Part shown: positions 2,807 through 16,742 of the stretch, piece after piece
Layout of the letters: every line of letters starts with the position of its first letter
Numbering within the stretch: the stretch's first letter is position 1
Sequence record: NC_048747.1
DNA length: 64,000 bases
Direction: 5' to 3' (one strand)
Position numbers and translations under genes: made by a program
The notes under the pieces: generated by a model
The model's database searches: none
Told to the model about the DNA's origin: nothing
Seen by the model: only the letters and a program-made list of their open reading frames with translations

Positions 2807-3772
2807 TTACCAACACATTGAATCGCCATCAGCGTCCTCTGTGAGGTCTTTAGCACGGGTTTTATGGAATTGTGCTTGACGTTCCGCTGCTTGTTGCTCA
2901 GAACGCTGTAGGTCTTCGATAAGTTGATCCGTAACACTATCGTACTCTAGCATCATGTGTAGTTCACCCGTTTTGTTAGGGGTAATGGTGTCTGGATGCA
3001 TGACACCAGTAACGCGATAACCTTTACCGATTTGTACTGAGCGGATATCGTTACGGTGAGAGTATAGAGAGAAACTCGCCACTGCGACACCGGTACGCTG
3101 GTCGATAGTTTGACCGTCGTAGTACTCGATGCGAGTTAGTGCAGGCGGGATATCAATTGCACTAGAGTAGTTCAGTAAGTGACGAACGTCTTCGTAGTCC
3201 GACTCTTCATGGATGTCAGTTAAGAACAAGCTAAGTAGATTCAAACGCTCTACCGCAAGTTCATTCATTTGACCACGATTCATTCGCTCATTGTTTTCTA
3301 GGACATCTAGTACTACCGGTTGGTTAAAGTACTTACGCTGACCATCCAAAGAACGAAGTGTGGCTAGTGTGTTTTCAAACTCGATGTCTGTGGTTTGGTC
3401 TAGGACTAAGAAAGAAACCACGGGAACACCTGCTTCCATAAGAGCACGAACCAAGTAAGGACCGATAGTAGAACCCGACGCACCCGCACCACTGTAGATA
3501 ACAACGTTGAAATCACCTGGACGGTGTTTGATCAACATTTGTTTCACGAAGTCTGGGATAAGGTCGCGGTTAAGCGTACGTTTCTTACCACCACCTCGGG
3601 TGTTAGCTGGTGATTCGACAGTGAAAGCGTCATCATCAGGACGGTTGTTCATGGACGTATCTAAGCCAATGAAATCCACTTGTGCTAAAGGTAGATTTCT
3701 TAGTGATTTGTTCCATGCCGAGCCAATGTTGATACCCGCACCACCAACACACCATGCACGTAATGTAGACAT
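2807..3772 (-). CDS. phuZ: PhuZ phage tubulin (spindle protein)
   Basis: N-terminal GGAGINIG loop, RGGGKKR loop, tubulin-signature variant SGAGASGSTIG, coiled C-terminal helix with acidic tail; ~320 aa; AAGGAG RBS. Confidence 0.93.
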   Translation of the reverse strand: MSTLRAWCVGGAGINIGSAWNKSLRNLPLAQVDFIGLDTSMNNRPDDDAFTVESPANTRGGGKKRTLNRDLIPDFVKQMLIKHRPGDFNVVIYSGAGASGSTIGPYLVRALMEAGVPVVSFLVLDQTTDIEFENTLATLRSLDGQRKYFNQPVVLDVLENNERMNRGQMNELAVERLNLLSLFLTDIHEESDYEDVRHLLNYSSAIDIPPALTRIEYYDGQTIDQRTGVAVASFSLYSHRNDIRSVQIGKGYRVTGVMHPDTITPNKTGELHMMLEYDSVTDQLIEDLQRSEQQAAERQAQFHKTRAKDLTEDADGDSMCW

Positions 3773-3811
3773 AATAAACTCCTTTAAAGTTTAGCTAAAA
3801 TATTTAAAATG

Positions 3812-4382
3812 CAAAAAAGTACCATCCCGGATTTCGGGATGGTCAAAGCAGTGTTTCACAGTACCTCGCTGAAAGTACCCGAACTGGATTCTCAAAGACA
3901 TTTGTCTTTTGCGGTCGAAAACCCAGCCGGCTAGCCTCGGCGTAGCATCCCTTTATTGGAGCGTTGGAGCTGGCTGAAAACGCTCTCCTTTTTTATAGCG
4001 GTCAAGGGGTTTACCGCTGGGGACCGAGGAGTTAAAGGCAACTCGGTCCAACAAACAGAAGGCTCGGCTTCCGCTTGATCATTTGATCCAATGGTAATGG
4101 TTGTGCAGGGCACGGAGAAAAAACCATTTGGAGGCATCAGATCAAATAGGGTTCAGTCCAGAACAAGTAACTAACATCGATGACTAGGGACATGGCTCGT
4201 CATTCTGGACTGAAAATAGTGATCGCCATGGGGGTGGCGATCGGCGCTTTATACTCGTAACACGATATGAGTAAGCTGTGAGCGGTTGTAATGAAGGAAT
4301 AACTTCCTAGGTCGGACTCGCGGTATACACCTTTTCTTTTCGGACACGCTAGTCTAGCTAATCCTAATCTTGTACCGCTCAC
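3812..4382 (-). ncRNA. Putative ~570-nt structured non-coding RNA of unknown family
   Basis: No credible ORF; GC-richer than flanks; at least 8 inverted-repeat helices (e.g. 12-bp 4152-4163/4203-4214; 10-bp 4277-4286/4374-4383); TATG at 4382-4385 and terminator at 3821-3843. Confidence 0.7.
3821..3843 (-). terminator. Intrinsic terminator closing the putative ncRNA
   Basis: accatcccg-gattt-cgggatggt stem followed on minus strand by ACTTTTTTGCATTTT. Confidence 0.85.
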
Positions 4383-4410
4383 ATACAATGTACACTGAGT
4401 TAGGAATTAA

Positions 4411-5112
4411 TTACAACCTTGACAGTTGACGGAATCGCTTTGGACCCATCCCATATTTATTCTCGAACTTAACCACAAAATAGTTAAAGTCACGAAACCC
4501 TAATTTAAGTGCAAGTTCTTTAATAGGTTTGAGATGATTAGGGAGTCTACCGTGGGCCTGGTTTAATCGGAAGTTTAACAAGTGAGTTTTGAAATCTTCA
4601 CCGGTATGGTGTTTGATAATCAACTCAATTTCTTGATGGGTTAAACGAAAGCGGTCCGCAAGGACGTGGACGGATACCTCTGGGTCATTGTAATGTTTCT
4701 TGACATAGTCCAACAAATAAGTTTGTCGTTGAACTGTGAGTTTAGGATGCTTTTTAAATAACTTCCAAGCATGGTCTTCCGTCTTAGGTCTATGGCGGTA
4801 ATCCACAGGAGTTATGCCAAATAACTTAACAAAGTTTTCCCGCAGTGATTTGGGTTTGGTGTAACCGACAGCCCTGGAGATGGCGGTTATCTCCAGGTCC
4901 GTAGTGTCGATAAGTTTCTTCGCCTCTAACATCCTCAACAAAGTGATGTAATCATAAAGACTGCCTTCATTTGCATCACGAAGCATTTTAAGGACTTTAG
5001 TGCGACTAAACCCAGTCTTCTTCAATACCAACTCGGTCGCATCTGTCTCCAGGCAATATTTCTTAGCCGCGTCTTTGAGCTTCTTAAGTTCTCTGGATTT
5101 CTTATCAAACAC
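4411..5112 (-). CDS. Protein made of two tandem AraC-type HTH DNA-binding domains, no sensor domain
   Basis: Two AraC C-terminal signatures: ITAISRAVGY...FVKLFGITPVDYR and IKELALKLGF...FENKYGMGPKRFR. Confidence 0.85.
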   Translation of the reverse strand: MFDKKSRELKKLKDAAKKYCLETDATELVLKKTGFSRTKVLKMLRDANEGSLYDYITLLRMLEAKKLIDTTDLEITAISRAVGYTKPKSLRENFVKLFGITPVDYRHRPKTEDHAWKLFKKHPKLTVQRQTYLLDYVKKHYNDPEVSVHVLADRFRLTHQEIELIIKHHTGEDFKTHLLNFRLNQAHGRLPNHLKPIKELALKLGFRDFNYFVVKFENKYGMGPKRFRQLSRL

Positions 5113-5830
5113 GAACGCCTCTCAGAGTTTCCCGAAGTTCGACAATGTTAACTCCATAGACTTCCTGATATTGCTTACGTAAATAAGTAGCACTACAAGA
5201 ACCTACGGTAGTCGCCAGGTCAGTGATTTTAATACTTGGATTTTTGTGGAGTAACTCCTTAGCTAATTTCATCCTAGTATCCTTTCTCCATTCACGATAG
5301 GGTTTACCATAATAGTGCTCAAACATTTCACTTAGGCTACGATCTGGTAAACCAAACTTCTTTTCCACATCAGCGTAATTAAGATTCACTTTGATGTTTT
5401 TACACAAATAACTCAATATCTTCTCACGCAACTCACTAGGATAATATCGGTCCATAGTTTCTTTAGAATAAGAATCCATGGTCGGTACCTCAAGGGAATC
5501 CACGTAGTCTTCACGAGGATGGCGTTTAAAGAAAGCTTTGTACTCTTTGGTGAAAGATTGGTAGTGAGAATAACCAACATGGGCTCCTGCTAACGTTGGT
5601 CTGATTCCGGATTCCAATAGAGACTTGGCTTTAACTAAGCGTTTACGTCGAAGGTATTCGCCAGGAGTTGTACTGCGTTGTTCAGCAAACAAACGGTATA
5701 CATCTGGGATGAAGACTCCCAGTTGGTGACTTAAGTCTTTAACGGTGACTTTTTCCAAGTAATGTTCACTTATCCATTTGTCCAGATCATCCATTAATCG
5801 AGTTCTGGATTCTTTATCTACAGGGTACAT
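5105..5830 (-). CDS. Protein with two tandem AraC-type HTH domains
   Basis: TPGEYLRRKRLVKAKSLL...VGYSHYQSFTKEYKAFF and KPYREWRKDTRMKLAKELL...ITDLATTVG...YQEVYG. Confidence 0.85.
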   Translation of the reverse strand: MYPVDKESRTRLMDDLDKWISEHYLEKVTVKDLSHQLGVFIPDVYRLFAEQRSTTPGEYLRRKRLVKAKSLLESGIRPTLAGAHVGYSHYQSFTKEYKAFFKRHPREDYVDSLEVPTMDSYSKETMDRYYPSELREKILSYLCKNIKVNLNYADVEKKFGLPDRSLSEMFEHYYGKPYREWRKDTRMKLAKELLHKNPSIKITDLATTVGSCSATYLRKQYQEVYGVNIVELRETLRGVRV

Positions 5831-6996
5831 GGTTCTGTTACCTCTATCTTACCTAAACGTATGTCATCTTCTCTGATGCATAAGTCAGCATTAGTTTTAA
5901 CGAAACGGATGAATTGTTCAGTATTGTAACGACGCGTAAGGGGACCTTTAAGCTTGCGGATTTCTACTGGAGTTAATCCGTAGTTCTCGGTTAACTGCCT
6001 TCTAACATCGTATTCATAATCCGAACCAACTTTTCTCAGGATCTTAGTGAACTTCCAACGAGTGTTTTGTAGAAAGTAAACAATGAGTTCCAGACGGATA
6101 CACTGACGCACCTTACTTGGAAGCATGCCCGTGTAGAGGGTAAACATTCGTTCCCAAGAGTGTGAATTGAGACCGTAGAACTCTCTTAGTTGATAGAGGT
6201 TAAGGCGGTCGTCCAGCAAGTTCTCGGTAACGTTATCTAGAATCTCATCCATAAGAGAAGGCATTACCCAAACGTTTTCACCATGAACCTTGGCCCACGT
6301 ACCAATCGACAAAGACTCGCCGTAATCACTAGTCGTCATACCGTACTTTGCTTTGAAAGCCTTGTTGAGTCCGGTAGGAGCATTATGCATGGTCATGCCC
6401 ATTAAACGAGCTTCTTTATAGCCGTGAGTCTTTATTTGGTCTGCAACGTATTCTAGTTGTCGATCCAATAAATGAGCTCGAGGTGTCTTGCCGTACATTT
6501 CAATAAACTTACGTTTAATGTAAACGTTGCTGTAACCGTGTTCTTCCATGAGTTCGGTGACGTCTTTGTAAAAGTTTGGATTGAGGTCGATCTTTGTAGC
6601 AATAGATTTAGCGATGGCGTCGATCACACCTGAGCTTGGAGTCTTAGACTTAAGACCCATTCGTGCTCGCACCTTAGTAGGACGCTCTCCAAAAACTGAC
6701 TGGTACCAAACGTAGAAATTCATCGTCTTATCGTAACCGAGAGTTTCTGCGATTTCACTTAGTGAGAGCTTACCTTCGGTGACTAAAGTTTTAGCTAACT
6801 CTTTACGTAACTCTTTCAAATAGTGCGTCGGAGTTTCAAAACCTTGGTTTTCAAAACGTTTGGTAATTGCGTTGGGACAGGTCTTTTGTAATTTAGCGAT
6901 GTCGGTAAACTTTCGCTTTTCTTTATAGTACTTTTCTATGTTCTTAAAAGTTAATGCTGTGATTGGATCTTCAGCGATAGGCAACTCGATGGACAT
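5818..6996 (-). CDS. Protein with about three tandem AraC-type HTH domains
   Basis: LSLSEIAETLGY...FGERPTKVR; FIEMYGKTPRAHLL...FKAKYGMTTSDY; YTGMLPSKVR...NYGLTPVEIR. Confidence 0.8.
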   Translation of the reverse strand: MSIELPIAEDPITALTFKNIEKYYKEKRKFTDIAKLQKTCPNAITKRFENQGFETPTHYLKELRKELAKTLVTEGKLSLSEIAETLGYDKTMNFYVWYQSVFGERPTKVRARMGLKSKTPSSGVIDAIAKSIATKIDLNPNFYKDVTELMEEHGYSNVYIKRKFIEMYGKTPRAHLLDRQLEYVADQIKTHGYKEARLMGMTMHNAPTGLNKAFKAKYGMTTSDYGESLSIGTWAKVHGENVWVMPSLMDEILDNVTENLLDDRLNLYQLREFYGLNSHSWERMFTLYTGMLPSKVRQCIRLELIVYFLQNTRWKFTKILRKVGSDYEYDVRRQLTENYGLTPVEIRKLKGPLTRRYNTEQFIRFVKTNADLCIREDDIRLGKIEVTEPCTL

Positions 6997-7849: not shown

Positions 7850-7915
7850 GTCCTAATCACTCCTACTAACGTTATTTACTAATAACTTACATGACTCAGT
7901 TTTATTTACCCTAAA

Positions 7916-7928
7916 GTAATATAGAACT
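7916..7928 (-). promoter_or_regulatory. Early-promoter-like motif AGTTCTATATTAC
   Basis: Contains TATATTAC, the phiKZ early promoter core; identical 13-mer at 15783-15795; both lie upstream of minus-strand genes. Confidence 0.6.
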
Positions 7929-8185
7929 AAAATTCTTTTCTACTGAATCATTTCCCTATTACATGGACTCACTGGCATCACTACTCGTTATACGTAGTAC
8001 ACTCCTTTTATCGTGTTTACGTACTTCGTACTACAACACTCACCGTGACTATTCGTACCTCATAGATCACTCTAAGGAGTACTACTATAACTCGTATGCA
8101 AAAATAACCCTTTCCCATCCTTTCTAGGGGGTCTTCGACGGTTTTAGTTTAGTACATATAATATATTATCCGTTAGAAAATAACT

Positions 8186-13352: not shown

Positions 13353-13574
13353 GGTCTAATAACCTTAATTAACTACTAAATATTCAAAATGCAGTATAAA
13401 CCCTAGTAGGACTCCTTAACGGACATCCTACTATGTATCTATACCTTTAACGTATGACTCTTTACCTTAACCACTTCACTCGTGATACTCGTTACGTTGT
13501 AAGGAAGTCATACTCTATAGTTAGATATATTAATATATTAATATTAATTATCTTGGGCTTTGCCCGAATCTTTT

Positions 13575-13662
13575 AACTAACTTGAACCAACTAACCTTGA
13601 CACCCACTCAACCTTGACACCCCTATCACCTTGCCCCTATCACCTTGCCCCTCTTTCTCCCC
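13575..13662. repeat. Tandem imperfect direct repeats (iteron-like) with four C4 runs
   Basis: accttgacacccactca / accttgacacccctatc / accttgcccctatc / accttgcccctc at 13594, 13611, 13628, 13642; aactaac(c)ttga at 13575 and 13589; CCCC at 13620, 13634, 13648, 13659. Confidence 0.9.
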
Positions 13663-13801
13663 ATCGCCTTTCACTTTTAGGGGTGAAAATAACGATGAAA
13701 AAACAGGTAAAATAACAAGATTTTAGAGTACAAAGTAACCGTTCAATAAAAATGGGGTAAAAAGGTTTTGTAACATATAATACATGTCACTTAGTTTTTA
13801 A

Positions 13802-16674: not shown

Positions 16675-16742
16675 CCTTATTTTTGCATTTTGGAATTTTA
16701 TTGAACCACATACCGACCATCCAACTCATAAGGTAACGTATT

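Follow-up and report, generated by a model that had tools for sequence, protein, structure and literature searches.

What is encoded in the largest non-coding gap of a tightly packed jumbo phage genome? The window that we analyzed is a stretch of 64,000 nt, bases 1–64000 of Vibrio phage 2 TSL-2019 (NC_048747; genus Aphroditevirus, subfamily Gorgonvirinae), which is a nucleus-forming jumbo phage. The largest gap in its 242-kb genome spans positions 3773–4410 (638 bp) and lies between phuZ (2807–3772) and the last of several genes for AraC-type helix-turn-helix (HTH) proteins; the genes are all on the minus strand. A first, sequence-only reading of this locus had proposed a large structured RNA with its own late promoter and a terminator, and had raised a possible link to PhuZ and the phage spindle. 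We found that the gap encodes a real, large, strand-specific structured RNA, which is non-coding. It has 570 nt on the minus strand (4382–3813).

A structured RNA on the minus strand

The minimum free energy (MFE) fold of the minus strand of the gap is at −203 kcal/mol, as compared to −155 ± 6.8 kcal/mol for dinucleotide shuffles (z = −7.05), and none of 100 shuffles folded as well. The fold of the plus strand gave only z = −3.2. Also, the structure contains many conserved G-U pairs. These would be A-C mismatches if read on the opposite strand, so selection acts on the minus-strand transcript. All eight of the inverted repeats listed by the sequence-only reading are where it had placed them, according to both the sequence and a repeat finder, and all are used in the minus-strand MFE fold. 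Three elements were absent from its list of helices: a long irregular 3' hairpin (D3), a pseudoknot, and, in the 5' domain (D1), a conserved core.

No open reading frame (ORF) in the gap exceeds 68 aa; the ORFs have no match in Pfam and shift in position even among relatives that are 92–95% identical, which agrees with the earlier view that the gap has no credible ORF. The position and frame of the longest ORFs vary from lineage to lineage, and the alignment of relatives has indels of 1–2 nt, not multiples of three. With a repeat finder, we found no tandem repeats in the gap and only two-copy, chance-sized direct repeats.

Homologs of 428–572 nt are present in ten related phages or contigs. 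The genome of 2 TSL-2019 has one copy of the RNA. BLASTN identified the same gap in the phages PDCC-1, phiKT1019, Aphrodite1, USC-1, and 5 TSL-2019. A protein search with PhuZ, combined with look-ups of contigs, led to three divergent lineages of uncultured phages from the Sequence Read Archive (SRA), L033, L034, and L035, whose PhuZ proteins are 61–65% identical; it also returned partial or near-identical copies of the RNA locus. We reached the sister genus Tidunavirus by synteny: the phages VP4B and pTD1 have homologs of 476 nt and 493 nt, respectively, directly after a three-gene HTH array.

We built a covariance model (R1) that covers the central hairpins H1–H4, the junction J, and D3. The score of R1 is 73.5 bits for L033 and 45.8 bits for L034; in L035, pTD1, and VP4B it finds the D3 core, at 14–20 bits. 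In the resulting alignment of nine distinct sequences, 97.6% of the cells form standard pairs, and 32 of the 56 pairs have changed on both sides; covariation among homologs is what the sequence-only reading had proposed as a check on its RNA. As controls, we shifted the partners by 1–3 columns, which gave 2–10 double-changed pairs, and none of 500 shuffles matched the observed value. Together with the folding z-score, this abundant compensatory covariation bears out the claim of a large structured RNA. It is only on the minus strand that compensatory changes uphold the fold.

Wherever H3 is present in a lineage, its loop forms a duplex of 4–8 bp with J, with the compensatory series CCCU/AGGG, CCCCU/AGGGG, UUCACCU/AGGUGAA, and GUUCGCC/GGCGAAC. 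As predicted from this series, the H3 loop and J form an H-type pseudoknot. RNAalifold had suggested a different closing of the central domain, by CCCUA/AGGG, which we rejected: CCCUA is missing from the Tidunavirus copies, and it is J with which the H3 loop covaries. We also rejected a long-range helix between the tail of the RNA and the spacer before the TATG, as it was inconsistent across lineages.

To check if the RNA belongs to a known family, we searched the 64-kb window with Rfam 15, whose families include HEARO, raiA, and the riboswitches, and found no match at the gathering score. For positions 3700–4500, the best matches had E > 5 and were to unrelated eukaryotic models, and Rfam gave nothing for the RNA region of four homologs. 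ARAGORN identified no tRNA or tmRNA genes, either within the window or elsewhere in the genome. The Rfam and ARAGORN results agree with the statement in the sequence-only reading that the RNA could not be matched to tmRNA, RNase P, introns, or 6S RNA, and the Rfam check that it had outlined, including ROOL, GOLLD, and OLE, matched no family.

In kind, the RNA resembles ROOL and GOLLD: it is a non-coding RNA from a phage, with several domains and a length of several hundred nucleotides, it is defined by covariation, and its peripheral hairpins vary while the core is kept. However, the ROOL and GOLLD covariance models do not match it even at E = 10. ROOL and GOLLD are usually found near tRNA arrays, whereas this RNA is in a 242-kb genome without tRNA genes and its constant neighbor is the array of AraC-HTH genes. 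Also, it is restricted to one subfamily and is found in a strictly lytic nucleus-forming Vibrio jumbo phage. We conclude that the RNA and its homologs make up an orphan family of large structured phage RNAs, like ROOL and GOLLD in kind and unrelated to them by sequence, structure model, or genomic context.

The protein-binding sponges CsrB and RsmZ are another point of comparison. Like them, the RNA has an array of hairpins with a shared bias in loop composition, the number of hairpins varies among close relatives, there is a terminator at the end, and there is a single copy. In contrast to the GGA-bearing loops of the sponges, its loops are C-rich (CC, CUCC, CCUCC, and CCCCU). None of the loops that are conserved between lineages contains GGA, and the predicted loops are G-poor (10–20% G) as well as C-rich. 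Other features that the sponges lack are the invariant core of the RNA, its long-range helices, and its pseudoknot.

Within the same virus family, phiKZ has intergenic small RNAs, candidates from ONT-cappable-seq and Grad-seq that derive from UTRs or are bounded by terminators, with a phage promoter on one side and an intrinsic terminator on the other (PMC10914365, PMC8545117). These are 70–200 nt long with one or two stem-loops, and no covariation was reported for them. In size and structure, the RNA described here differs from these candidates, with 430–570 nt and more than ten helices.

To examine the distribution of the RNA more broadly, we scanned IMG/VR with three motifs, a 15-mer and the cores of D1 and D3, and ran one motif scan each on the JGI metagenomes and the GTDB genomes. 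Hits to the 15-mer in IMG/VR and the D1-core scans were judged with nhmmer and by eye, and hits to the D3 pattern in IMG/VR and GTDB were judged with model R1. These scans returned known phage genomes and chance matches in coding regions, and nothing more. A PhuZ-based search of IMG/VR for the locus found only four genomes, all of them already known. Among outgroup chimalliviruses, the corresponding loci of RisingSun, L044, and Miami had no match to the models; for RisingSun and L044, this was also the case with the filters off. L044 (an uncultured Logan contig; 3646–4580) and Erwinia phage RisingSun (L030, 3345–4000) do have 650–935 nt of non-coding sequence upstream of phuZ, with modest structure (z about −3), and we found no homology of these stretches to the RNA. 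Word-level resemblances that we noticed by eye in the outgroup chimalliviruses were due to chance. As far as these collections show, the RNA is confined to the Gorgonvirinae, which are jumbo phages of Vibrio and Photobacterium (Aphroditevirus, Tidunavirus, and a few uncultured relatives). As far as our searches show, the family was previously undescribed and is new for the nucleus-forming phages.

From the presumed start to the terminator

Late promoters of phiKZ consist of TATG with transcription starting at the G (PMC4666361; the rule is also given in PMC7598289), as the sequence-only reading had correctly stated. In phiKZ, TATG is necessary and not sufficient (PMC4666361). In 2 TSL-2019, there is a TATG at 4385–4382 on the minus strand, and helix P1 begins with its G (4382), just as first noticed from the sequence. 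We consider 4382–4399 (minus strand) to be a promoter-like segment, with this TATG, a presumed +1 G at 4382, and a partly conserved upstream block (GTGTA-like). The TATG and the block upstream of it are invariant in ten lineages, within a spacer of 15–25 nt after the stop codon that is otherwise variable. In all ten lineages, the first helix begins exactly at the G of the TATG. TATG is also found 28–41 nt upstream of two late genes in the window, which encode the terminase and a large virion protein. From these signals, we infer that the RNA is independently transcribed from a TATG late promoter, which is plausible but unproven. The TATG at the presumed start and the G+C-rich hairpin with a U-run at the end are as in the late transcription units of phiKZ (PMC4666361, PMC10914365); the differences are that the product here is non-coding and that use of the promoter is predicted from the sequence.

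The 5' domain, D1 (4277–4382, minus strand), is a rod-like hairpin that is closed by P1 (4382–4374 with 4286–4278). P1 forms in 10/10 lineages with six different sequences, and it always starts at the G of TATG. A model of D1 (R2) scores 135.7 bits in the window and 33.5 bits in L033. The apical core of D1 (GUCCGAA, 7 nt, GGUGUAUACCGCG; 4319–4345, minus strand) is near-invariant while the flanking helices have diverged. Because this core is almost invariant, it carries no covariation signal. The GGU/ACC mini-hairpin of the core has the same stem and a different loop in pTD1.

D1 is followed on the minus strand by variable hairpins. V1 (4276–4246) and V2 (4242–4221, with loop ACCCCCAU) occupy 4221–4276 and are both in the MFE fold; they are present in 2 TSL-2019, PDCC-1, and phiKT1019 and are missing from Aphrodite1 and USC-1. 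V3 (4214–4152) and V4 (4147–4081) occupy 4081–4214. The stem of V3 covaries among the Aphroditevirus genomes, and V4 is missing from Aphrodite1 and USC-1. The partial absence of V1–V4 (4276–4081) from these two phages explains why their RNA has just 428 nt.

The central array of four hairpins (3958–4077, minus strand) comprises H1 (4077–4052), H2 (4049–4021, with loop GCCUUUAAC), H3 (4018–3997, whose loop includes CCCCU), and H4 (3988–3958, whose loop includes CAGCUCC). These hairpins covary: the loops are kept while the stems change. Across H1–H4, 22 of the 31 pairs have changed on both sides, and 94–100% of the cells are paired. The junction J (AAAGGGA; 3948–3954, minus strand) supplies the other strand of the pseudoknot with the H3 loop.

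D3 (3862–3947, minus strand) is a long hairpin of irregular shape. Its core, CCGG-CUGRRYU ... ARRYYCAG-U-UCGG, is conserved, and its tip varies. D3 is the most widely conserved part of the RNA: R1 matches D3 in all lineages, including L035, VP4B, and pTD1, and there are double changes at 10 of its 25 pairs. Next is a single-stranded tail (3844–3861, minus strand) with a conserved CACUGCUU; this is conserved in Aphroditevirus, and both of the Tidunavirus genomes have CCACUGC.

The RNA ends with an intrinsic terminator (3813–3843, minus strand), and the presumed 3' end is at about 3813. A terminator scan found a 9-bp hairpin (3843–3821) with 6 G-C pairs in its stem, followed by six U, which corresponds to the U-tailed terminator that had been noted at about 3812. 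The terminator is present in 10/10 lineages, with a covarying stem and a CCAUCC-type sequence that is kept.

Beyond the RNA, at 3798–3813 (minus strand), is a promoter-like motif, TGCATTTTAAATATTT, that would drive phuZ. In the window, the motif (TGCATTTTNNAWWTTT) has three copies, at 3798–3813 (−), 13378–13393 (−), and 16684–16699 (+), as compared to 0.12 expected. Each copy follows a hairpin and is 25–45 nt before a start codon, and one of the copies is at the head of a divergent operon, which must have a promoter to itself. Since the motif recurs and lies downstream of the terminator, phuZ probably has its own promoter. A second AT-rich motif (of the TTCTATATTAC type) is found upstream of three other genes.

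Two other non-coding gaps in the window share a feature at their beginnings. The second long gap, at 13353–13801 (−), lies between an HNH endonuclease gene and gp018, starts with ATTATATGT, and folds with z = −5.7. It contains iteron-like direct repeats (of the GGGTGTCAAGGTT type) beside a very AT-rich stretch. A part of 176 nt is 89% identical in Tidunavirus VP4B, where it is also beside an HNH gene. These features suggest that this gap may be a replication origin or a mobile segment linked to the HNH gene. A 336-nt gap at 7850–8185 (−) also begins with ATTATATGT, and its predicted structure is weak (z = −2.2).

Upstream of the RNA, at 4411–6996 (−), are three tandem paralogous genes, whose proteins consist only of two or three AraC-type HTH domains and have no sensor domain. 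This three-gene array is kept in both genera of Gorgonvirinae, and the RNA is always directly downstream of it. Elsewhere in the window, a 194-aa ORF at 1420–2004 (−) lies in a gap without RefSeq annotation. An equivalent gene was called in several related contigs, so this is probably a missed gene. Outside the window, at genome positions 76581–76995 (L157 26581–26995), there is a 415-nt gap beside fragments of a split gene for an RNA polymerase beta-like protein.

What the RNA may do

The composition of the hairpin loops offers a hint about function. In each of four lineages, 34–46% of the loop nucleotides are C, as compared to 25–28% in shuffles, and no more than 1 of 60 shuffles had as much C as was observed. 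Similarly, 50–75% of the loops contain CC, versus 26–32% in shuffles. Conserved loops include CCUUUAA, CCCCU, and CAGCUCC, and the tip of D3 has CCUCC in L034 and in both Tidunavirus copies. These loops are complementary to the purine-rich ribosome-binding sites that are found throughout the window. Furthermore, hairpins with C-rich loops have been gained and lost between close relatives. Together, the C-rich loops and the turnover of the hairpins favor a trans-acting platform or decoy.

Our joint best explanation, to which we give a probability of roughly 0.5, is that this new RNA family is produced as its own late transcript, which folds into a platform for binding or a decoy that acts in trans. 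We propose that the phage's non-virion RNA polymerase would transcribe it from the TATG-type late promoter, with the +1 G as the first paired base, and that the intrinsic terminator would set the 3' end. Because both ends would be within helices, the RNA is expected to be stable. At early times of infection, this sequence would also serve as the 3' end of the mRNA from the upstream AraC-like operon. The weakest step is the activity in trans. There, the invariant single-stranded elements (the D1 core and the internal loops of D3) and the C-rich loops (CCUUUAA, CCCCU, CUCC, and CCUCC) would bind a protein or purine-rich segments of RNA, and the gain or loss of hairpins between relatives would alter the number of C-loop sites. 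The only neighbors that are constant are the tandem-HTH proteins, three of which are encoded just upstream; they would be the first candidate partners, in line with a suggestion of the sequence-only reading.

Several points weigh against this explanation. The promoter, the ends, and the abundance of the RNA are predictions from the sequence, and TATG is a short motif that is insufficient by itself in phiKZ (PMC4666361). Without a terminator upstream, the RNA may exist only as a 3' untranslated region (UTR) or as a processed piece. The idea of a binding platform was drawn from loop composition alone. The two pairings that we considered for the H2 loop did not hold up: a match of 7 nt to the ribosome-binding site of phuZ has an estimated probability of about 0.09 by chance and is absent in L034, and a 9-nt complement in the gap at 13353–13801 is not conserved in USC-1 or phiKT1019. 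As for the structure, the alignment was fitted to the model's structure, which favors pairing (though the margin is large), and just about 8 independent lineages are behind the covariation. For the inner fold of the D1 core, RNAalifold, single-sequence folds, and model R2 gave no consistent answer, and phiKT1019 does not fit the P1a register of the other lineages.

A bolder proposal, which we consider doubtful, is that the RNA represents a new functional class that is specific to nucleus-forming phages. This could take two forms. First, the RNA may be a compact, pseudoknotted core of a ribonucleoprotein, or an RNA-only assembly, that is produced late in the phage nucleus and captures purine-rich RNA with its C-rich loops, of which CUCC, CCUCC, and CCUUUAA are anti-Shine-Dalgarno-like. 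Second, it may be a decoy against a host factor that targets RNA, possibly together with the adjacent all-HTH proteins.

The other explanations are, in order of plausibility, an element of the 3' UTR, a catalytic or self-assembling RNA, a leader that acts in cis, and an element at the level of DNA. Perhaps the RNA is mainly the structured 3' UTR of the AraC-like operon, where it would stabilize or localize the mRNA in cis or be the source of a processed RNA. In 10/10 lineages, including those without phuZ, the RNA lies directly after the last AraC-like gene and in the same orientation. The terminator scan found no terminator between the stop codon of the array, at 4411, and the RNA, so the sequence of the RNA must also be the operon's 3' UTR. 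RNAs that derive from UTRs are documented in the phages phiKZ and PAK_P3 (PMC10914365, PMC8545117). However, a 3' UTR needs neither an invariant TATG with its upstream block nor a first helix at the G, which predict a primary 5' end, and a pseudoknotted, multi-domain fold of 430–570 nt with invariant loops far exceeds what is needed for protection from 3' exonucleases. Also, in an SRA-assembled relative (L156), the RNA (3703–4341) is 95–97% identical to those of 2 TSL-2019 and PDCC-1, its nearest relatives, but the AraC-like protein encoded beside it (3001–3702) is only 68% identical. Given this gap in identity, the RNA and the AraC-like gene evolve separately. The contrast suggests either that recombination had a boundary at the RNA or that the RNA is under much stronger constraint. 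We consider a role as mainly a 3' UTR to be unlikely, though it is the alternative that fares best.

Might the RNA instead be catalytic, or a self-assembling ornate RNA? The cores of D1 and D3 and the pseudoknot would then be an active site or an assembly interface. The size of the RNA, the pseudoknot, the invariant unpaired cores, the fast-evolving helices, and the variable peripheral hairpins would fit a large ribozyme or ornate RNA. There is precedent in that large phage-associated RNAs are reported to form RNA-only assemblies (bioRxiv 10.1101/2024.12.08.627333); cages have reportedly been observed for ROOL and GOLLD. Conserved palindromes in D3 (of the AGCCGGCU type) and in the D1 loop could support symmetric contacts, but the helices in which they lie are predicted to be intramolecular, and Aphrodite1 and USC-1 do not have the palindrome of D1. 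Furthermore, the RNA is not similar to any model of a ribozyme or ornate RNA in Rfam, no substrate or cleavage site is evident, and the narrow distribution speaks against a core enzymatic role. Overall, this alternative seems improbable.

The order of structured RNA, terminator, ribosome-binding site, and gene is what would be expected of a regulatory leader that acts in cis, as is the short distance of about 45 nt between terminator and start codon. In such a leader (riboswitch-like, or an attenuator that responds to a protein), the terminator would gate read-through into the downstream gene, which here is phuZ. The sequence of the terminator's 3' arm recurs in J (GGGAUG), and a 6-bp antiterminator could form between J and the 5' arm. 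But this antiterminator would have only 4–5 bp in L034 and phiKT1019, and J's pairing with the H3 loop is better supported. The promoter-like motif between the terminator and phuZ, which recurs at two other gene starts, is another point against a leader. Also, the conserved sequence of the terminator resembles other terminators of the same phage, as reported for phiKZ (PMC10914365).

A further argument against a leader is that the downstream gene is not conserved. Tidunavirus phages lack phuZ (PMC11724907), and the annotations of VP4B and pTD1 do not include it. Both phages keep the RNA, with a different gene downstream: where Aphroditevirus has phuZ, these have a small gene of 96–97 aa. In the sequences themselves (8598–9538 of L162 for VP4B and 2157–2812 of L163 for pTD1), there is no phuZ between the terminator of the RNA and the gp006-like gene. 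In VP4B, this gp006-like ORF is unannotated; by eye, it has roughly 97 codons and starts near L162 9238. Because the RNA is kept in phages without phuZ, a link to the spindle, as the sequence-only reading had suggested, or a role as a leader of phuZ appears unlikely. We also considered the phiKZ RNA known as the "5' UTR of p40" as a positional analog and disregarded it, as the paper shows no link to phuZ (PMC8545117). We would place a cis-acting leader of any kind even lower than a catalytic or self-assembling RNA.

Finally, constraint on the DNA itself (as a replication origin, a tubulin partition site, or operators for the AraC-like proteins) might be suspected, given a large non-coding stretch with many inverted repeats beside DNA-binding proteins and a relative of tubulin, but it is very improbable: there are no direct or tandem repeats of the iteron or centromere (tubC-like) type, the conserved G-U pairs and the asymmetry in z-scores show selection on one transcribed strand, DNA-binding sites would not explain conserved loops with covarying stems, and the link to tubulin is broken in Tidunavirus.

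An orphan RNA in the nucleus-forming phages

To our knowledge, only a handful of bacterial or phage RNAs above 400 nt have a well-supported structure and no known function. Where such large orphan RNAs were later solved or explained, they revealed new biochemistry. As far as our searches show, the RNA described here is the first candidate for a large orphan RNA in the Chimalliviridae. Its weight is limited by its narrow distribution, which is one subfamily and about ten sequences. In practical terms, the largest gap that annotators have left empty in these genomes gains a feature with a name, and these phages are under development for phage therapy in aquaculture. In the Chimalliviridae, transcription takes place inside a protein-walled nucleus and RNA has to cross the shell, so a stable late non-coding RNA would raise testable questions about RNA localization, about RNA-protein interactions, and about how these phages take over the host.

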